DNA from: Rebecca billardiae RCC1528
Lineage: Eukaryota; Protista; Haptophyta
Direction: 5' to 3'
Length of the DNA: 64,000 bases
Assembly: GCA_965240325.2 (NCBI GenBank)
Contig: OZ251241.1
Span: forward strand, 434,001-498,000
Within the stretch, counting starts at the first letter, position 1; the number at the start of each line of letters is the position of its first letter. Shown here piece after piece: positions 1 through 12,814 of this stretch. Under the pieces are notes generated by a model. The model searched no databases. It saw only the letters and a list, made by a program, of their open reading frames with translations, and had not been told where the DNA came from. The position numbers and the translations under genes were made by a program.

Positions 1-3000
1 GCAGGCCCCGCGTATGTGTACGAGACGGACGTCTCGCCGCGGCTGCCCGACGACCCGCGCATCGTGATCGTCGGCGCGGGCCCCACCGGCCTGTGCGCCG
101 CGTACCGGCTCAAGGAGCTGGGGTACACCAACTGGCAGCTCATCGACAAGGGCAAGAGCGCGGGCGGCCTGGCCACGTCCATCACCGACCCGAAGGGCTT
201 CACGTGGGACATCGGCGTGCACGTGCTCTTCTCGCACTTCGCCTTCTTCGACGCGCTGCTCGACGAGCACCTCGAGCCGAAGCAGTGGCTGTACCACCAG
301 CGCTGGTCGCCCGCGTGGATGCGCAACCGGTGCGCGCGCCGCCGCGCGCCGCCGCGCGCGCCGCCGCCCGGCCGCGCGCCGCCGTCGGCGCCGCGGCGCG
401 CGCTGAGCGCGGTGGTGCCCCGCTGCCATCGGCGCGGCGCTGTGTGTGTGCGCGCGCGCGCGCGCGCGGCACCAGCTGGGTGGGCTACCCGATCCAGGCG
501 AACGTGTGGCGGCTGCCCGAGGAGGAGGTGGCGGAGATCCTCACTGACCTCTCGCAGCTCAAGCCCGACCCGACGGCACAGCCCCGCAACTTTCTTGAGT
601 GGTGCGGCGCGCGCGCTGCGAAGGAGCGTGCGGCGCACGCGCGCGCGCACACACGCGCGAGACGGTGACGCGCGCGCGCGTGCGCGCCCCCCTGCCCCGC
701 GCGCGGCTGCCAGGCTGCACAACGGCTTCGGCAAGGCGCTGACCAAGACGTTCATGGCGCCATACAACTTCAAGGTGTGGGCACACCCGCCCGAGCAGCT
801 CAACACGATCTGGGTGGGCGAGCGCGTCGCGACGATCAAGTTCCAGGACATTCTGAGCAACGTGATCGCGCGCAAGGTGCGCGGCGCGGCACGCCCGCGC
901 GCCGCGCCAACCGCCGCGCCCGCCCGCGCCCTGCTCACGAGCGCGCCGCGCGCGTGCGGCCGCGCCCCGCTCGCTGCTGCGCCCGTGCCTGCGCTGCGCC
1001 CTCGCTCCGTGCGCCGCAGGACGCGCCGGCGTGGGGCCCGAACGCGCAGTTCCGGTACCCGATGAACGGCACAGGCCACATCTGGGAGGCGGTCTTCAAG
1101 ACGCTGCCGTGGGAGAACATCCGGATGGGCGCCGAGATGTCGACGGTGCACGCGCCGCCCGCGGCCGAGGGCGTGGCGACGCCGCGCGCGGGCGAGAAGG
1201 GCGCGCGCCACATCAAGCTGGCCGACGGCTCGTCCATCGAGTTCGACGCGCTCGTGAGCACCGTGCCCGTCGACCGGCTGCTCAAGAGTGGATTCCCCGA
1301 CGACCCCGTCATGCCCAAGCTCGCCGAGGGCGACGACAAGTTCAAGCACCAGGTGAGGCCGCGCGCGCCCTGCCGGGGCCCGGCGCGCTGCGGGCGCCCA
1401 GCGCCGCATGTGTCGCGAGTGCCGCCTGCGCGGTCTCGCGCCTCGCGGCGTGCACGGCTGTGGGCGCGGCCACGCGCCGGGCGAGGCTCGGCTCGCGCCG
1501 CCGCGCGGCGCGCCCCGCGCTCACGCCCCCGGCCCGCGCCCGCCCGTGCGCCCCCTGTGCCGCGCAGACCGTCAACTTGGTGGGCGTGGGCATCGCCGGC
1601 CAGCCGCCCGCCAAGCTGAACGGCGTGCACTGGGTCTACTTCCCCGAGGAGGAGTTCCCCTTCTACCGCGTGACGGTGCTCTCCAACTTCTCACCGCTCG
1701 TCGTGCCCAAGCCGTTCGAGCAGTGGTCGCTGCTCGTCGAGGTCTCCGAGTCCAAGTGCGCGGCGGCTGCGCGCACGGCGCCGCGCGCCGCGCACGGCGC
1801 GCGAGGCCGCGCGCGCCACGCGGCGCGGTAGCGGTGCCGGCCTCACCCCGCGGCCGCCGCCGCCGCCCCGCGCCACCTCGACGGGCGCAGGTACCGCGAG
1901 GTGCCCAAGAGCGCGGCCGAGCTCGAGCAGAAGGTGGTCGACGGGCTGCGCCGCGCGACGATGCTGCCGGCTGACGCGCAGATTGACTCCGTCTGGTAAG
2001 GGCTGCACGCGGGCTGCACGCCTTGCGCGCGCACCGCGCACCGCACCGCACCGCGCACCGCACCGCCCGCTGGCCGCTCGGCGCCGCCCGGCGGCCCGCC
2101 CGCTCACGCCGGCGCCGCCCCCCCTGCGCGCCGCTCCCGCGCGCGCTCGCAGGTCGACGCGCCTCGAGTACGGCTACCCCGTGCCGTACGTCGAGCGCAA
2201 CATGCACATGCACATCGCGGACGAGGAGCTGCGCAGGCGCGGCATCTGGAGCCGCGGCCGGTTCGGCTCGTGGAAGTACGAGGTGCGAGGAGGGGCGCGC
2301 GAGCGCACGGCGGGCGAGCGCCGGCGTGCGCTGCGCGGCGAGCGCGCGGCGGCCGCGCGCCACCCTCAACCGCGCCCCCACCCGCGGCCCCGACCGCGGC
2401 CGGTGCGGCGCGTGCGACAGGTCGCGAACCAAGACCACTCGTGCATGCTGGGCGTGGACGCGATCGACGCGATCCTCTTCGGCGGCAACGACGAGGGCAT
2501 CGAGGCCACGTTCAACTCGCCCAGCAAGGTGAGCGGGCACGGTGCCCAGCGGGCGCGCGCGCGCGGGCGGGGGCGTGCGCGCGCGTGGGTGCGCCGTGCG
2601 CGCGGCGCCGCTCAGCCCGCGCCGCGCGCGCCGCCCCGTCCGCGCGCGCCCTCCCTCGCTCGCAGGTGAACAACAAGTACCGGCCGTACGACCGCGACGC
2701 GGACACAAACCCGGCGCAGCTGCTCGCCAAGGCGAAGCCGCACAAGGGCGGCGTGCCGCGGCGGCACACGCGCTTCGACAAGCCGCGCACGATGCTGACC
2801 CCGCTGCCGACGTGGGCGGCGGTCGCGTGGCACTGTCGCGAGGAGGACGGGCCGTGGTCGCAGGCGTTCAAGAACGCCGTGCCCGACTCGCGCTCGCCGC
2901 TCGGCCGCACCAAGTTCTTCATCTACTCCTACGAGCGGTGCGCGCGCGGCGCACGCGCGCACGCACGCATGCGGCGCGGCGCGGCAGCGCGAGCAAGCGC

Positions 3001-4146
3001 GAGCGGGCGCGCCGCCGCGCGCTCACGCGCCCCGCGGCGGCGGCGGCGGCGGCGGCGCGCGCGCGCCCGCCCGCGCTCGCAGCTGCGGGCTCGCCGACAC
3101 CAAGCGCCCGGCGAACGCGATGCTGCACGAGGGGCTGCACCACCTCGACCGCGTGCCGTACGCCACGCCGCCGACCAACGTATCTGCACTCGCGCACCAC
3201 GTGGCCACGCACTACGACACGCTGCCCGACCGGCTGCTGTTCGTGAGGTGCGCGCCGCGCGCCGCGCGCCGCGCCGCACGCGCCGCGCGCGCCGCCGACG
3301 CGGCCCCGCGCGCGCCGCGCGCCCCCCCCCCCCGCGCGCAGGCCCGGGCGGATGTCTGCGGACCGGCTGCCGCCGTCCGTGCGCGAGCCACTCGCCAACA
3401 TCGCCGGCCGGCCGCTGCTCGTCGTGCCGGCCGCGTCTCAGCGCGGCGAGAAGCTCGAGGCGGTGGACGGCGACCTGCCCGCGGCCCTCTGCCCCGTGTA
3501 CCGCGCGGTGCTCGGCGTGGCCGACTGCCCGAAGCGCGTCGCGCTCACGACGGGGTGGGCCGTGCTCGGCGCGAGCCGCGAGCGGCTGCGCGCGGTGCCC
3601 AAGGAGCGGTGGGAGGCGATCGTCAAGGTGCTCGCCGAGCTGGGCGCGCGCGGCGCCGCCTCGACGGACGGGCACGCCGCCGCGCTCGTCGAGAAGTTCG
3701 TGCTCGGGCTGTGGCCGCAGCTGCTGGGCGGGCGCGCGCAGCCCACGGCGGCCGAGCTGCTCGTGCCAGCCGAGGCGCCGGCGGGCGGCTCGCGCGGCGG
3801 CGCGGCGGCGCACGCGCCCGCGCACAAGCACGCGCTGCCGGCCGAGGCGCAGCCAAGGCCGCACCCTGCGCTGCAGCTCGAGCCGACCGCGCAGCCGGCG
3901 GCGGCGGCGGCAGCGCCCGAGCCCGCGGCGCAGCCCGCGGCGCAGCCGGCGGCGGCGGCGGCGCAAGCGCAGCCGGCGGCGGCGGCGGCGGCCCAGCCGG
4001 CCGCACAGCAGCAGCCGGCGGCGGCGGCGGCGGCGGCAGAGCGGCCCGCGGCGGAGCAGCCGGCAGCGCAGCCGGCGGCGGAGGCGGCGGATGCCGCCGG
4101 TGCCGTCACACAAGCGGACGCCGCCGCGGGCGGGACCTCGTCCTGA
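1..4146 (+). CDS. glf: UDP-galactopyranose mutase (eukaryotic type) with C-terminal DUF3431-like domain and Ala/Pro/Gln-rich tail; 5' end lies upstream of the window
   Basis: Exons ~5-329, 476-601, 714-876, 1020-1352, 1568-1755, 1891-1995, 2153-2282, 2421-2528, 2666-2937, 3083-3247, 3342-4146, all GT-AG and phase-consistent. Motifs: FAD-binding GAGPTG, GGLATS..GFTWDIGVHVLFSH, YNFKVWA, WVGERVA, WGPNAQFRYP, FYRVTVLSNFS, YGYPVP and [22 protein letters not shown], all typical of fungal/trypanosomatid UGM. Confidence 0.9.
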
Positions 4147-5453
4147 GCCGGCGCGAGCCGCGGGGACGTGCGACCTCTCGTGATCGGCGGCAGAGCGCGG
4201 AACCCTGCTCCTAGGCCGTGGCCGGGCGCGCCGTCAGTGCCGCGTCTGCGCACAGGCACCGACTCGGACTCACCGCGAAGTGCCGCCGACTGAGCCTGTC
4301 GGCTGTCTGCCAGTCAACCGGTCAGGCCGGCTCACGGCTGTGCCTGACGCCTGTCATTGGCCGCGGAGTCGCCACGCACTGTCACTGTAACTCCCGTGGC
4401 CGTGCGGCGGCCGCCGCCGGTCCGGTCACTACTGACTCCGAGTCCGCATCCGGGGCGGGCGCGGGCCGAACCGAGCTGCGCCATACGGTCGTATTATGAA
4501 GTGCCGAGCAGTCTTCAGAAACGGCCGATGGGCCCTGACTGGCACTCCTCCGAGTCGATCGTCCGCGCTCCGCCGGCCGGGGGGGGCGCCGCCGGGGAGT
4601 GTACGACTTATTTATCGTCGGGGCAGCGCGGCTCGGACCGACACTCTCGGACCGGGTGGCTCACCGTCCGCCGCCGATTCTCTCGGACTCACGGGGTGCG
4701 CGTGCGATGGCGGGCGCGGCGTGGTCGGACACGTGCGCGGAGAGGGGAACGCGGACTGTGTTTACACCCGCGGAGCCGCCGGCAAGTGCACCGGACAGCG
4801 AGCGGGTGCACTCGACCCGAAATGCCCGCTCTGCACCTGTCGCACACTCAAATGAGAAAATCGCACGCGCATCCGCGGCCTGCACGGGCGCCGCCATCGC
4901 CGTGCGCATTTCGCGCGCAGGTGTTGAGATCACATCGCACCCGCACTGTGTTTACACCCTCAGACTCAGAGGAGTGTGCGACCATGTAGCCGTGTCGCAC
5001 AATGCCGTGGCACGGCTCATGTCACTGAATGATGGCGGATCCCCCATACACCATTGCACCCTGAACTTTGGTGTTTTGCGGTGATCAAGGGATTCAAGGT
5101 CTGGATAATGAAGCGTTGCTGACTATATTAATCGTTGACGAACTGGGACGATCGCATGTTACTGCACTACTTTACGGGTAGTGCTGTCGATAAGGAATGC
5201 AATTAATGTAAGTATGATTGTTGTATTGAATCGTGAGAATATTGGGGAAATGTAACAGTAATGTAATGATGATGAGAAGATTTGTTGTCAGATGTATATC
5301 TCTGCGCCCATTTGAATATATCGTTATCCTTTCATTAACGATGCGGACTACCGGATGGGTGATAATTGTGTTTTTGACGTGGCCGCTCATAGGCGATGCG
5401 CAAACAATCCAAACATCAGTACGGTAATAGGCGCCACTGCTAACCACGCAGTC

Positions 5454-8400
5454 ATGACGAAATTCGCCTCCGTTGCAGCCCGAACCCCTGATCAAGAGCA
5501 TCGCGGGACTGCCTCACAGCCCGTGCATCTGCGCACGCCGCGTGGCAAGGCGACCTGCGGCACGATGCAGCGCGCACCGCACCCGAGCACCAACCTTGTG
5601 ATCGTCACGGATCCGGGGCCAGACCCAGATGACGTCAAAGGTGCAAGCGCTGGCCCCAACCACGCGCGCGCTTTCACGGCGCGCGTGTCACCCGCCACGT
5701 CCTCGTGGGCGCCTGCGCTGACGAGGTGTTGCGCGCCACCCCGTCACGCACCCGCGTCCCGCCTTGGCGCAGCTATCCTCGTCGCGGCAGCCCTCCACAG
5801 ACGCGACAAGCTCCAGCTGCGCGCCGTCATCGCCAATGGCGGCGGACAAGCTGAGCGGCGCGCGTGCCTCGCCCGCCTGCTGCTCGACCGGCTCGGTGCG
5901 ACCGACGTGCCCGTCGGCGTGGGCACGCCTGGGCGCGATTACGACGCGCAGCCGCACGAGTTCCGGCTGAGCGGCGTGGACGACGTCGACCGGGAGCGGC
6001 TGGAGGACGGCGCGGCGCTCTTTGAGCGCACGCTCCTCGAGATGCCCCCGGCGTCCGTCACGGTCGTGTGCATCAGCAGCCTGCGCGATTTCGCCGACCA
6101 GATCCGAGGCAACGCGGAGCTCGTGCTCAGCCGGGTGTGCGAGGTGGCGATTCAGGGCGGGCTTGAGCTGGACTCCGAGGGCAAGTGGGTGCCCGACACG
6201 TCGGTGAACAACGGTGCGTGCCTGCCGGACTCCGGCCCCGGCTCGCAGACTGCGCGCGCGTCGTCTCATGCGCGCTCACATGCCGCCCGACGCTGCGCGC
6301 CGCGCGCGCGCCGCGCAGGCTTTGACATGGAGGGCGCGGCCGAGGTGTACAGCTTCTGCCTGGCGCACGGCATGGCACTCTCCGTCGTGTCCCGCAACGC
6401 CGTGCCGCTCCTGCCCATGCAGGTGCGCACCGCGCTCGGCCGGCGCGCGCGCGCGCGCGCCCGGCACGCTCGCCCTGCTGCTGCGCAGCGTTGGGCGCTG
6501 CGCTGAGCTGACCAGCGCGCGCGCGCTCCCTCCACGCACCGCCACTCCCGCGCGCGTGGTGCGAGCACAGCTCGCGCGCAGCTTCGCGACGCGCACGTCC
6601 GACGAGGTGATGAGCTACCTGGCCGACGCGCAGTTCCTCGGCCTCGAGGGCCTCTGGCAGAAGCTGTGCGCGGGCAAGCTGCCCGCGCGCTGCTCCAAGC
6701 AGTGGTACTTTGAGACCTTCTGCGGTGTGGGCGACGACAGCGCGTACGAGGCGGGCGGGTACGAGCAGCTCGGTGGCGACGCCGACATCGTGAGCCACCT
6801 CGCGGGTTCCGTCAAGCCGTACGATGTGGTCGCGCTCATGACCGTGCTGCCGCAGACGCGCAACGACTTCCCACCCGCGCTGATCGTGCCGCAGGCCGCG
6901 CCGCCGCGGCCGCCCGAGGTGGCGAAAGCCAGCGCGACGAGCTCGCCGGCCATGTCGCTGCGCTCCGGTGGCTCGCCCGCGATGCTCCTCCGCTCCGGGG
7001 GGGGCTCGCCGCACACGGCCCCCCGCTCCGGCCCGAGTCCGTCCACCCGCCGCCGCGGGCGTGTCTCCTCGACCACGCCGGCGCCCTCTCAGCGGCTGTA
7101 CATCTGTCCCGAGCACTGCATCGACGTGTCACACGTGCTCCGGCTGCTGCGGGACACCTACCACGAGGTGGTGCTGCTCGCGCACGACGCGGCGACGGCG
7201 GGCGCGCCCGGGCCCGGTGGGCACCGTCCCACGCCGGACTCAACGGGTGCGTCCCCGCTGGGGGACCCGGAGCGAGGCGAGCGCGGCGCCGTCGCGGCCG
7301 AGGGTGGCCGAGGGCGGTCATCGTCCACCGTGCTGCAGCCTGCGGACGCGCTGCTTGCACTGCGTGCCGGTGTAGGGGCGCCGCCGCCCGTGGAGCGGCT
7401 GTCGTCCGGCGCGTCGCTCGAGGAGCACTCGCTCGAGCATCGCCCGCGGAAGAAGCGCCACCTGACTGCGCCCGGGCTCATTCGGCAGGCCACGGCCCCG
7501 GCCGCGCCGCACGCGGGCGCCGCGCCCGAGCCGCCGCCCGCGGCCCGCTCGCGCTCCGACGCGGCGCCACCAGACCATCCGATCGGCGAGGAGGAGGAGG
7601 AGGAAGAGGACTTCGTGCCGCCGCGGCGAGGTCGGCTCCACACGTGGGCCGGCCCCGCCGAACGGCTCACCGGCAGCCCGGCGTCGCGCATCACACGGGC
7701 TGCCGCGCTGGATGGTGGCGACGCGGCCGAGGCCGGCGGCGCTGCGCCGCTCGAACCAGGCAGCGCGCCGCAAGCGCTGCCGGCTGTGCGCTCCTCCGAA
7801 GGGATGCGCTCCTCGGCTGGGTCGCGCTCCTCCGGTGGCGCGGACGGCGTGAGCGAGCCGCGCGCATCAGGTGGCGCGCGCGAGCGCCTCGCGAGCGCTG
7901 TGCAGAGCCTCGGCACGCGCCACGTCACTCCACCCGCAGAGTCGGGCGCGGCTGGCGGCGCCCAGCCTGCGGACGGCGCGCTCGCGCTCGGCGCGCGCAC
8001 GCTCGAGCGGCAGGCGGAGCTGATCGGCCTGCTCGAAGGCGTGATCGCCGACGTGTCTCGCGCGCAGCGCCGGGTCTCGACCGCGCTCGCGCTGGCGGGC
8101 CTCGTGCTGCTCACCAGCACGTTTGGCATCTACGCCGGCCGCGGCCAGGGCCTGGGCGGGCCCTACACCACAGGCGTGCTCGTGCTGCAGCTGGACGCGC
8201 TGAGCGTGTGCTACTCGGCGGGCATCATGCTCGCGCTGCTGGGGCTGCAGCCGACGCGCAGCTTCGCGACGCCCACGCGCATCGCCGCGCTGCTGCTCTC
8301 CACGATCTACGCGCTCACCTGCGGCATCGCCTGCTCGCGCGTGCTCACCGCCGCCGCGTCGGACAACCCGCGCATCTCGGGCGCGGGCATCGGCGGCCCC

Positions 8401-9834
8401 GAGGTGGCGAACTTCTCGGCCGCGCGGTACGGCATCCGGTGGGAGGACCTGTGGGTGGCGGCGGTCTCGCTGCTGTGCCTGGCGTACGCGTCTCGCGCGC
8501 TGCTGCGGAGCGTGTGCGGCGCGCAGCGGCACGCGCGCGCGCTGCTGCGCGCTCTCGAGCTCGTGGTGGGCGTGAGCACGGCGACCGAGCTGCTGGGCGT
8601 GGCGGTGCGGCGCACGGTGCTCGGCTGGACGTACGCCCCCGCGCTGCCGCTGCTGATACTCGCGACCTGGACGCGCACGCTGGTCAAGGGCGCGATCGCG
8701 TACGTGCTGCTCCGGCCGAGCGCGCGCGCGCACGTGCGGCGGCAGGTGGCGCGCTGCCTCTATCCCGTGGCTGATCACGCCGACGGCCCCAAGGCGGTGT
8801 CGCCGCACACCACGGCGGCGCTCGCGCCCCTCGCCGGCTTTGGCACGCGCGGCAAGGCGAGCGTCTCGGCCGCGGCCGCCTCGACCTCGCCCGAGGCCAG
8901 CCAGCTCGAGCTCGCAGTCCGCTCGGCGTACGCCAGCTTCCGTGCGGTCGAGCTGAACAGCGCGCTCACCCTGGCGGCGGTGCGCGCGGCGTGGGAGCGC
9001 GAATCTCCGGGCGCGGCGGCCGACGGGGCGGGCAAGGGCCCGGCAGGCAGCTTCACGCGGCGGCGCAGCTGGCGCGTCACGCCGAGCAGCAGCGCGCGCG
9101 TCTCGCACGACCTGGAGGCGTCCGTCGACGCCGACACGCCGCCAACAGAGCCCACGTTTGCGACGCACGCGATCGTCGCCGTCGAGCCGGGCGCCGACAT
9201 GGTGGCCGTGGGCGGCGCAGCCGCGGCCGAGGGCTTTGGCGCGGATGTGTTTGTGGTGCACGCGCACGCCGACGACCCGGCGGCCAAGGCGGAGGCGCTC
9301 CGCGCGTGGGCCGCGCGCGAGCAGGTGGGCTCGTCGCCGCTGAGCGCGTGGATCGACTCGGTGTGCGTCGACACGGAGGCCGTGCCCGAGCCCGATCGGC
9401 TGATGCACGCGCTCGTCAGCATGCACCAGTGCCGCCGGCTGCTGCTGCTCACCGGGCCGGCGTTTGCCGACTCGCTGGCGTGCGCGACCGCCGTGCACTC
9501 GTGGAAGTGCCTGGGCCGCTCGCTCGAGGACGTCAGCGTGGCGCTCGTCGTCCCCGAGGGCAGCGGCGCGGGCGCGTCCGCCATCGAGCAGCAGATCATC
9601 GCCTCGTTCGACGCGTTCGCGGTCATGTACTGCGCGCTGCCCCGCTCTGAGGAGGACGCGGCGAGGCAAGTTCACGCCGTCGAGCTCGCGTCGCCCTCGG
9701 CGTATAACGAGGCGATGCGCGCTTGCGTGCCGCTCGTCTCGGCCGCGGTGGCAGCGGCGCAGGCCGAGCGGCGCGAGACGGGAGGCGCCACGACGATGAG
9801 CGGCGCAGCGCACCCTGGGCTCGCTGCCGAATGA
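5454..9834 (+). CDS. Inosine/uridine nucleoside hydrolase-like domain + low-complexity linker + ~6 TM helices + degenerate TIR-like domain
   Basis: Introns 5641-5772, 6214-6318, 6423-6570; start at ATG 5454 or 5565. NH-like motifs: VIVTDPGPDPDD, NGG, VPVGVG, ISSLRD, IQGG, NNGFD..AAEV, KPYDVVAL. Hydrophobic helices at ~8075-8715. C-terminal DVFVVHAHADD..K..AL..W..WIDSVC..CRRLLLLTGP. Confidence 0.75.
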
Positions 9835-10175
9835 CGCGGCGACGTATCGTACGACGAAAAATTGCTCCTCGTCCGGCGGTCCCGCTGCGGAAGTCATTCA
9901 ATCGGGGGTCGGAAGGGACTCTGCTGCATGGTCCGCTTCAAGGTTATTGACTTCGGCTCGGGGCCAAGACGTAACGGTCTGAAATAAACGGAGCTGGGGG
10001 GGGTGGACCGGAGCCGGAGCCTACTAAGTAGTACTAGTAGGCGCCCCGCGGCCCGCGAATCTGAATATGGCCGACGGGATCGTCACACGAGTCGAACGGC
10101 AGGCAATCGCGGGCAATAATAATACTACGTACGAATAGTCAGCAGCTTAGATGACGACGAGATCTCGTCGTCGAT

Positions 10176-10330
10176 CATCACACACACACATCACACACAC
10201 ACACAGCACACACACACACACACAGCACTACACACACACACACACACCGAGTGAACCGTGTCACACACACACACACACACATATATATAATATATATTAA
10301 ATTATATATATATACATATATATATATTCA
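10176..10330. repeat. Compound microsatellite, (CA)n followed by (TA)n
   Basis: Interrupted cacaca runs at ~10176-10281, then tatata runs to ~10328. Confidence 0.9.
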
Positions 10331-11739
10331 TCGTCACGCGGCTAGTCTCGGTTTCTTAGCGCGGTCTTAGCCGTTCGGTAGCCCGAGCGCCTACGGAGTC
10401 TCAGTGCCTTAGCTAGGTGGCGCACGGGGGGGGGGGGGGCATTAAGACTCCCCGCTGTGAGTCTTTAGGCCTGGCCGGCGTGAGGCCGACGAAAATTTTG
10501 GCCAGGGCCAATTTGGAGCAAATATATGATGGCATGACACTGATTGATGTTGCATGGATGCTGCGGTGCACTGGCGCCGAGGAGTCAGTCATCAGGAGAA
10601 GTCGGGACTTGGCCTGTCCTCGTAGTCAGGGCCGCGCGCCGCGTCCCACGGGCACTGCGCCTCGGCGGACCACTCGTCAGCCGCGACGACGTAGTCCCGG
10701 TTTCTTAGTGTGACTATGCGTATAGCGAACCAGCCAATCGCTAGTCTCAGTTTCTAGGCCAGATCCGCAGATAGCAAGCCCCAGTTTCTTCACGTGACAG
10801 CTCCTTATTGCCCGCGATTGCCTGTACCCGTGCCGTGGGCCGGATTCTGATGCGCTGACACTCACTGGATCTCTGTCTCTCCGAGTCTCTGACGAGGCTA
10901 GGTACTACCCGGTACCCCAGGGTACCCCGGTACCCGCTATAGTGCCATAGTCACATAGTCCGAATAGTGGCGCCCCTACTGTACCGCGCGCGGAGACCGA
11001 GTAGTCTGCCGCTGACTACGACGAAGAGCAGGCGATATCCGCTGATCAGACGACACCGGACCGTGTAGCCACCGATTCGCAGGATCCGATTCCGGAGTGC
11101 CAGCTGGTGAGGCCTCACGCCGCCAGCCTCTGAGCAGCCAGCCGCCGCGCCGTAGTCTGCGACCGCGGGCCGTCTACCGACCGGTCTCCGCGTACTCACT
11201 GCTGCCAGTCGGCTGTGACTACACCGTTTCCGCGCGGTCGTACTACTTGATGTAAGTTGTACACTCGACACAGCAATATCAATCATATTGATGTGTCGTG
11301 GCTTCGGCTGCCCTGTGGCGCCGTTGTTAGTTCTCCCGGGAATCCTGCCGCGCGGTCCGCGCCGGCGAAACGCGCACAACTCTGTCTGGGCCGAGGATGT
11401 CCTCGGTGGCCCATCCTGATGAGCATCCGCTGGATTCACCAGCTCACCTGGCGGCCATGCTCCGCGGACTGCGAGCGTGCCATTCGGCCCCCGAGCGACC
11501 GGGACGGGAATGGGATGTCCTCATGATAGTACGCACTTCCGCCGCCGTTTTGACATTGTTTGGCCGTTGCCCGTTGACGGTTGGCGCGCTTTGGGCTTTG
11601 GCTGCCGAAACGCGGGCCGGCCGCCGCGTGCGGAGTTTCCCGGACTGCCGCGCACGAGTGAGAGTGCCCACGGTTGTGAGCGCAGGGTGGCTGCAGTCCC
11701 TGCCGTTGAAGCGGGCGTCGCCGCAGCACGCGCGCCAAG

Positions 11740-12698
11740 ATGACGATGCAGCAGGCGGCACTCAACGATGCGATGCTCGGCGTGACGCAGGAGGCGGTCG
11801 TCCGGAATGTCGAACGAGACCTCGAGGCCGCCGCTGCGCAGGAGGCCGCGCGCCGCGCCGGCCTCGCGGGCGACGAGCAGCTCGAGCACACGGAGGAGGC
11901 GATCGCGGCAGCGAGCCTCGCCGAGCGCGGCGAGGACGGGGAATCGGAGGATGATGATTTTGACGACCCTGCACTCCGTGCCCTTGAACAACGTCGTCTC
12001 GCTCAACTGAAGGCTATGTACGCGCGAGCCGCCACAATGCGCGCGCGCGCGCCATCTCTCACGCACGCTGCGCATCCCGCGCACACGCCGCCCGCAGGAC
12101 GGCGAAGCGGATGGAGAATCAGGCGAAGGGCCACGGCGAGTACCGCGAGATTGTGGAGGACGAGTTCCTCAAGGAGTGCACCTCCTCTGTACGCGTCGTC
12201 GTCCACTTCTTCCACGGCGACTTCGAGCGGTGCAAGATCATGGACAAGCACTTGCGGGTGATCGCGCCCAAGCACGACAGCTGCAAGTTCGTCTCGATCA
12301 ACGCGGACAAGGCGCCCTTCTTCGTGACGAAGCTTGCGATCCGCACGCTGCCGACACTCCTCGTCTTCCACGACGGCGTGTGCAAGGACCGCGTCGTCGG
12401 CTTTGAGGAGCTTGGCGGTGCGCGCGCGGCGCGAGGCGTGAGGCGCTCTCCTTGCCTTTGCGCGCCCCTGCTGCTCACCTCTGCCTCCTGGCGCGCGCGC
12501 GTGCGCCCGGACGACGCAGGCGAGGACGACTTTCCGACGCGCACGCTGGAGGTGCGACTGCATACGGCAGGGGCCATCATGCTCGCGAACAAGAAGAAGA
12601 AGAAGGGCGGTGGCCGCGCGTTCGCGCACGCGGGCACATACTCGGACGAGGAGGACGAGAGCGAACGCTCGGACGACGACGACGACGAGGAGGATTGA
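11740..12698 (+). CDS. TXNDC9: Phosducin-like thioredoxin-domain protein (TXNDC9/PLP3 family)
   Basis: Exons 11740-12017, 12098-12417, 12520-12698. Sequence: LEQRRLAQLK..GHGEYREI..EFLKECTSS.RVVVHFFH.DFERCKIMDKHL..A.KH....F..INADKAPFFVTKL.I..LPTL..F.DG...DRVVGFEELGGEDDF.T..LE. Confidence 0.9.
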
Positions 12699-12726
12699 GT
12701 TGTGCCGCGTGAAACGGGCACGCGCT

Positions 12727-12814
12727 CTCACGGCGCGACGCGGCCGCTATGCGGCATCGCCAGCCGCCGCCTCACGGCGCGACGCGGCCGCTATACGGCA
12801 TCGCCAGCCGCCGC
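12727..12814. repeat. 44-bp tandem duplication just downstream of TXNDC9
   Basis: ctcacggcgcgacgcggccgctat(g/a)cggcatcgccagccgccgc at 12727 and 12771. Confidence 0.85.

Follow-up and report, generated by a model that had tools for sequence, protein, structure and literature searches.

A predicted XopQ/HopQ1-like hydrolase joined to six membrane helices and a TIR-fold domain in a family of pavlovophyte proteins

We analysed a window of 64,000 nucleotides from the haptophyte Rebecca billardiae RCC1528 (assembly GCA_965240325.2, contig OZ251241.1, positions 434,001 to 498,000 of the forward strand; all coordinates below are counted within this window). An earlier reading made from the letters alone, here called the sequence-only reading, had pointed to a gene that joins a nucleoside hydrolase (NH), membrane helices and a TIR-like domain without its catalytic residue. 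DNA reading and homology place a single spliced gene at 5565-9834 on the forward strand, with at least four GT..AG exons and a product of about 1,294 residues. The product is assigned to a large pavlovophyte (haptophyte) family, which hitherto consisted only of hypothetical proteins in databases. It is predicted to carry a hydrolase domain of the XopQ/HopQ1 type, a long linker, six transmembrane helices and a C-terminal TIR-fold domain in which the catalytic Glu is replaced by Ala. We consider it about evenly balanced whether this protein is a membrane-bound breaker of TIR signals that is docked or regulated by its pseudo-TIR domain. Exons were joined only for numbering and hydropathy, and all searches and structure models used single exons or exon pieces.

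Relatives of the C-terminal domain numbered 296 at E<=1e-3 among 1.84 billion representatives, far more than chance would give. In 41 of the 159 relatives that were retrieved, a hydrolase, a transmembrane cluster and a TIR-like domain follow each other in that order. These fusion members include P0004, an open reading frame (ORF) marked complete in an MMETSP transcript, while the fusion ORFs of P0008, P0017, P0036 and P0059 fill contigs of 3.0-4.0 kb and hence are intron-free. Members with a species name come from Diacronema lutheri, which has at least six such genes, and from Pavlovales sp. CCMP2436; all are annotated as hypothetical proteins. Since the same architecture recurs in so many relatives, transcript-derived ORFs among them, the predicted fusion of hydrolase, transmembrane block and TIR domain is regarded as real. 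The protein of the locus itself was absent from the protein collections searched, where the best match had 70% identity over 10% of the query. The sequence-only reading knew of no described protein with this architecture, and we found no paper on a hydrolase-TIR fusion; however, the hypothetical proteins were already in databases and algal HopQ1-like proteins had been reported in 2018 without the fusion (PMC6019455). The novelty is the combination of two known kinds of protein, the HopQ1-like hydrolases and the TIR membrane proteins.

The hydrolase domain is placed in the XopQ/HopQ1-like (HLP) clade and not among the generic inosine-uridine nucleoside hydrolases. An NH-like domain with the Asp-rich metal-binding motif TDPGPDPDD is present as the sequence-only reading had described; the motif lies at 5607-5633 in exon 1 and the NH-fold domain runs on through exons 2-4. 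Exon 2 by itself reached just 20.7 bits with the Pfam family IU_nuc_hydro (PF01156), whose cut-off is 34.2, because introns split the domain at this locus. In the relatives, P0008 (42.5 bits) and P0004 (38.9 bits) passed the cut-off and P0001 (30.7 bits) was below it. A family profile made from the relatives' hydrolase domains matched the XopQ structures 4kl0, 4p5f and 7jlu_B along its whole length (profile positions 6-308) with 141 bits (E 5e-40), whereas the best canonical NH reached 41.6 bits against the same profile, in the N-terminal half only. The best PDB sequence matches of exon 2 were these same XopQ chains, and a phmmer search with 6571-6918 returned XopQ structures only (E 4e-4). 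XopQ residue numbers were transferred by way of chains 4kl0 and 7jlu_B, so that the residue equivalences are deduced. TDPGPDPDD was aligned to XopQ TDPNKDPDD and carries the equivalents of D116 and D120, while KPYD was aligned to LYD and its Asp (D292, nucleotides 6823-6825) is the equivalent of D399; all three are kept at the locus in the profile-XopQ alignment. Where canonical enzymes have a His-Asp pair, the His is replaced by Tyr, as in XopQ. The hydrolase signature is kept in most full-length members, the locus included.

A June 2026 preprint reported that XopQ hydrolyses the TIR product 2' cyclic ADP-ribose (2'cADPR) to ADP-ribose (ADPR) with near diffusion-limited efficiency, that its D120N/D399N mutants are inactive, and that TIR immunity in plants is blocked by it, as is a 2'cADPR-based Thoeris system (10.64898/2026.06.15.732069). 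The bond reported to be cut is the ribose-ribose O-glycosidic bond and not an N-ribosidic one. The activity was reported for six bacterial XopQ homologues only; eukaryotic homologues were not discussed and a TIR fusion was not mentioned (10.64898/2026.06.15.732069). The sequence-only reading had proposed that the NH domain supplies an N-glycosidase output. The XopQ type of the domain suggests instead that the likely output is destruction or processing of a TIR signal.

The C-terminal domain reads DVFVVHAHADD...WIDSVCVD...RRLLLLTGPAFADSLACATAV. The sequence-only reading had left it to modelling to tell whether this region adopts a TIR fold, and a TIR fold is what the models gave. AlphaFold2 (AF2) predicted a beta-alpha fold with a predicted local distance difference test (pLDDT) of 91.1 and a predicted template-modelling score (pTM) of 0.86. 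The top 50 Foldseek matches in the PDB were almost all TIR domains, with plant TIRs at a probability of ~1.0, E 1e-3 and TM-scores of 0.40-0.47. VIA Z scores were 10.7 for AbTir, 10.4 for RPP1, 10.1 for MyD88 and ~9 for SARM1 and RUN1, and the TIR matches overall had Z 8-10.7 and a root-mean-square deviation of 3.0-4.2 A. In an independent wide search, residues 395-577 again matched TIRs. The TIR-like pattern given in the sequence-only reading is also real, and it matches the consensus of 88 aligned relatives, DxxVVHS..DD..K..VWLD..C.D..LL.L.GP.....LWCxxEL. Pfam TIR_2 was found in 20 of these 88 relatives (best 1.7e-6), HET in 8 (best 0.0054) and TIR in 3. The TIR family profile reached the TIR chains of TLR15 and SIGIRR at E 1e-3 to 1e-2, and a phmmer search of PDB sequences with the TIR region of a Glu-bearing dinoflagellate relative returned nothing. 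The LWCvvEL of the profile was aligned to SCWCQYEL of the TLR15 TIR, and from this alignment, together with the known alphaC motif WCxxEL, which carries the TIR catalytic Glu, the equivalence of the catalytic Glu was drawn at the level of the residue.

In the locus copy, the alignment columns place Ala at the position of the NADase (NAD+ glycohydrolase) Glu, just as had been read from the letters (residue 1181, nucleotides 9490-9492). The Trp of the same motif is also Ala (residue 1177), and the HSW of betaA in the family reads HAH. The Glu is kept in 21 of 40 hydrolase-linked relatives, against 85 of 105 other relatives with transmembrane helices and a TIR domain. In the TIR-domain tree, the locus falls in a clade of eight sequences (SH-aLRT 99), including KFE25_002818 of D. 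lutheri, and all eight are Glu-less. Elsewhere in the domain this clade is strongly conserved (LGRS, FDAFAVMY, YNExVR). The dead TIR is a feature of one subclade and not of the whole hydrolase-linked family. The earlier proposal of a nucleotide-signalling or immune protein remains plausible in that a single protein is predicted to combine an NH fold, about six transmembrane helices and a Glu-less TIR.

About six hydrophobic helices had been noticed between the two soluble domains, and both hydropathy and the AF2 model agree with this number. The model of 8050-9831 (m44400c67eeb4, pLDDT 79) has six long helices at 2-34, 41-65, 70-104, 131-157, 162-191 and 200-221, followed by short juxtamembrane helices, a disordered stretch and then the C-terminal domain. 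Stretches rich in Arg and Lys were read before the first helix, between the second and third, between the fourth and fifth, and after the sixth. There is no signal peptide and the number of helices is even, and thus both soluble domains should face the cytosol; by the positive-inside rule we infer an N-in/C-in topology. Modelled together with the C-terminal region, the transmembrane block had no match in the PDB above the helical background. BAR domains, coiled coils, designed bundles and ORAI came up at Z 7-9, which is background for helical models, and they were rejected as relatives of the block. Pfam searches with the raw ORFs likewise gave no match for the block. Clusters of haptophyte proteins with transmembrane helices and a TIR domain in the ESM Atlas match the model of the block with TM-scores of 0.56/0.71. 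The transmembrane and TIR-like module also occurs in haptophyte clusters in which members have an HNOB (heme NO-binding) or a C-type lectin domain, which points to receptors built from modules whose N-terminal domain can be exchanged. Relatives with transmembrane helices and a TIR domain were also seen in the dinoflagellates Zooxanthella nutricula and Kryptoperidinium foliaceum. Outside both enzyme folds, few stretches are as well conserved as the motif LAPLxGFG, which lies between the last transmembrane helix and the TIR domain.

Taken as a membrane-bound breaker of TIR signals, the protein would work as follows. The hydrolase domain would cleave an ADP-ribose-derived TIR product, either 2'cADPR or an algal analogue, as reported for bacterial XopQ. 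In family members with a Glu-bearing TIR, which are the majority, the signal would be made on the same chain, giving a built-in maker and breaker. In the locus copy and the rest of the Glu-less clade, the TIR would make no signal; its task would instead be TIR-TIR docking or regulation, by which the hydrolase with its membrane anchor is brought to assemblies of active TIRs, and the Glu-less copy would then act as a signal terminator or damper. The six-helix block could be an anchor, a sensor or a pore.

Several points weigh against this reading. The activity of XopQ rests on a single 2026 preprint, and XopQ Tyr279, which has been proposed to contact the substrate, corresponds to Val in the algal proteins (DTSVNN), whose substrate may therefore be a different one. 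In three relatives (P0001, P0153 and P0023) neither the Asp cluster of the hydrolase nor the Glu of the TIR remains, yet the architecture is complete; these may be scaffolds without enzymatic activity or copies in decay, and parts of the family may therefore decay or work without enzymatic activity. The TIR-like domain of the locus itself has no Pfam match, TIR, TIR_2 and HET included, and the TIR_2 matches of the relatives were below the gathering score where checked (25.3 vs 28 bits). Finally, the idea that the pseudo-TIR acts in docking is purely conjectural.

The strongest alternative, which we regard as rather unlikely, is that the pseudo-TIR is a ligand sensor, an idea near that of the sequence-only reading. 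Its pocket would bind NAD+ or a cADPR isomer without turnover and would allosterically switch the hydrolase, the six-helix block as a pore, or both, so that the protein would be a self-contained receptor and not a partner of its paralogues. The age of the Glu-less clade and the conservation of the rest of its domain would fit such a sensor, as would the conserved LAPLxGFG between the transmembrane block and the TIR domain and the recurrence of the transmembrane and TIR module in haptophytes with sensor-like N-terminal domains (HNOB, C-type lectin). However, several positions that line the pocket are altered as well, namely those of HSW in betaA and the Trp of LWC, and the transmembrane bundle has no channel-like match above background.

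Another possibility is housekeeping nucleoside salvage by a membrane-tethered purine or pyrimidine nucleosidase, in which the TIR-like domain would be an oligomerisation module only, unconnected with TIR signalling. We consider this improbable. The protein does have the fold and the metal-binding motif of PF01156, and the algal family has retained the Asn of ANGG (canonical Asn39), which XopQ has lost. On the other hand, the similarity to XopQ is ~100 bits above that to any canonical NH and covers the XopQ-specific C-terminal half, and the canonical His is Tyr. XopQ and HopQ1 had also earlier been reported as inactive in vitro (cited in 10.64898/2026.06.15.732069). Moreover, at least 40 proteins have kept hydrolase and TIR domain fused, which suggests that the two are linked in function.

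The TIR domain might also still be enzymatic through another residue, with a different chemistry or substrate. One such residue could be the His that follows the lost Glu by two positions and is conserved as A[LV][LI]H in all but one of the 8 members of the Glu-less clade, and the domain is still under constraint. To our knowledge, though, all characterised TIR NADases (SARM1, plant and bacterial) need the alphaC Glu, and the Trp and Ser of the family motifs are lost too in the locus copy, so that we give this explanation little credence. Least probable of all is an artefact or decay, that is, two adjacent genes joined by a stop-free GC-rich spacer or a pseudogene copy: codon periodicity is weak across 7200-7950 and ~260 codons at 76% GC would stay open by chance in ~3-4% of cases (an estimate from base composition), but both flanking domains lie in one frame with no stop between them, no AT-rich spacer like those at the two gene ends lies inside, transcript-derived relatives have the same order with equally long linkers, and no domain has a frameshift or a stop.

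Compared with known systems, the hydrolase is closest to XopQ/HopQ1 and the eukaryotic HLPs, with which it shares the NH fold, similarity over the full length, the equivalents of the three Asp residues and the Tyr-Asp pair. Unlike XopQ/HopQ1, the algal gene is host-encoded and spliced, its hydrolase domain begins at residue ~10 without a secretion signal or a 14-3-3 site region, and the protein is fused to six transmembrane helices and a TIR fold; it also differs in the Val at Tyr279 and the kept Asn of ANGG. The 2018 report of an algal HLP clade that includes haptophytes never mentions TIR or membrane segments (PMC6019455). The C-terminal domain resembles the enzymatic TIRs (RPP1, RUN1, RPS4, SARM1, AbTir and Thoeris ThsB) in its five-stranded flavodoxin-like fold, with VIA Z 9-10.7 over 113-146 aligned residues, and in the family motif LWCxxEL, which matches the alphaC WCxxEL. 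It differs from them in that the locus has 8-14% identity and no Pfam match and has Ala for both Glu and Trp, and the algal domain is C-terminal to a six-pass block instead of being carried on NB-ARC/LRR, ARM/SAM or a single-pass receptor. Some likeness to the fungal HET domain (PF06985) was seen, since its motifs WxD..C.DQ and RxWxxQE resemble the consensus of the algal family and the nearest ESM Atlas cluster is automatically named HET. However, TIR_2 matches are commoner and stronger among the relatives (20/88 vs 8/88), and the strong structural matches are all TIRs, HET itself having been compared by sequence only.

Among membrane proteins with a TIR domain, the virus-responsive proteins of Gephyrocapsa huxleyi likewise begin with membrane helices at the N-terminus and continue into a cytosolic TIR. 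They have the conserved Glu and were proposed to be antiviral receptors, but neither additional domains nor a nucleoside hydrolase were reported for them (PMC12489294). Type VI Thoeris, made up of a TIR protein and the membrane protein ThsG, similarly combines a TIR, a 2'cADPR-type signal and a membrane component and is switched off by XopQ; unlike the algal family, it is a bacterial two-gene system without a hydrolase of its own.

The coordinates of the gene and its features are given in Table 1. The sequence-only reading had begun the gene at 5454, but the start codon is the ATG at 5565. Exon 1 aligned without gaps to relatives P0008, P0004 and P0036. In tblastn searches with the relatives, the region of exon 4 was matched at 6520-7257 and 8041-9828. 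The exon translations are gap-free against relatives at every junction, and thus the splice model is backed by homology. The 58 residues encoded by 6919-7092 are rich in Ser, Pro, Gly and Arg and occur in no aligned relative, and the tblastn matches restart exactly at 7093. This segment may be a fourth in-frame intron, and if it is removed the product has about 1,236 residues. The linker, which is 190-335 residues long in transcript-derived relatives, is probably disordered and may hold further in-frame introns. A GAG-rich run within it (7586-7612) encodes EEEEEEED.

Table 1. Predicted features of the gene in the 64,000-nucleotide window
Feature	Positions	Strand	Description
Exon 1	5565..5640	+	ATG and start of XopQ-like hydrolase domain; GT donor at 5641
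Intron 1	5641..5772	+	132 nt, GT..AG; once spliced out, the protein reads DDVK|A|ILVAAAL and is colinear with relatives
Exon 2	5773..6213	+	Hydrolase domain core (IANGG, DTSVNN)
Intron 2	6214..6318	+	105 nt, GT..AG; junction DTSVNN|G|FDMEG
Exon 3	6319..6422	+	Hydrolase domain
Intron 3	6423..6570	+	148 nt, GT..AG, frame-shifting; junction LLPMQ|LARSFA identical to relatives
Exon 4	6571..9834	+	One ORF, stop 9832-9834; C-terminal half of hydrolase, linker, transmembrane block, TIR-like domain
XopQ-specific C-terminal half of hydrolase domain	6571..7190	+	KPYD and conserved closing block LYICPEHCIDVSHVLRLLRDTYHEVVLLAH
Candidate fourth in-frame intron, or copy-specific 58-residue insertion in a hydrolase-domain loop	6919..7092	+	174 nt, GT..AG
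Linker	7200..8050	+	~300 residues, low-complexity, Ala/Gly/Pro/Arg/Ser-rich, acidic run; weak codon periodicity
Six transmembrane helices	8074..8700	+	Hydropathy and AF2 model
Juxtamembrane motif LAPLAGFG	8821..8844	+	Family consensus LAPLLGFG; in P0001, P0004, P0008, P0052
TIR-fold domain	9244..9804	+	betaA DVFVVH ... alphaE
Degenerate catalytic motif	9478..9492	+	Family LWCxxE to LACATA (motif LWCxxEL to LACATAV)

The GC content at third codon positions (GC3) is 0.9-1.0 across the folded domains, and 5500-9900 forms one block of 70-80% GC. The flanks at 5100-5400 and 10050-10350 fall sharply to ~40% GC; these AT-rich stretches look like intergenic or promoter/terminator spacers and like markers of gene boundaries in this genome. 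Because of the near-100% GC3 codon bias, long antisense ORFs lie over the gene at 7867-9897 on the reverse strand (676 residues), 6127-7116, 7158-8129 and 8775-9626. They were rejected as genes, being without homology support. The neighbouring ORFs at 1572-4989 and 12003-12731 had no Pfam match. No second paralogue was found in the window by tblastn, and matches elsewhere in it were low-complexity noise.

The XopQ result of June 2026 is very recent and lends the fusion a clear interest. A covalent link between hydrolase and TIR in a host-encoded family would be independent genomic evidence that both activities share one pathway, and it would place TIR small-molecule signalling in haptophyte algae, in which antiviral immunity is barely understood. 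Tentatively, and with less confidence than for the protein of the locus, the family might be an endogenous eukaryotic maker-plus-breaker module, in which case XopQ-type enzymes would be ancient native off-switches or processors of TIR signals that were later deployed by plant pathogens, and the Glu-less clade would consist of dedicated negative regulators whose pseudo-TIRs dock a signal-destroying enzyme to active TIR assemblies at a membrane. The family offers natural combinations in which both domains are predicted to be active, an active hydrolase is joined to a dead TIR, or both are dead, and the locus appears to be a clean example of the second class. These combinations would be useful in studies of the making of TIR signals and of their shut-off.

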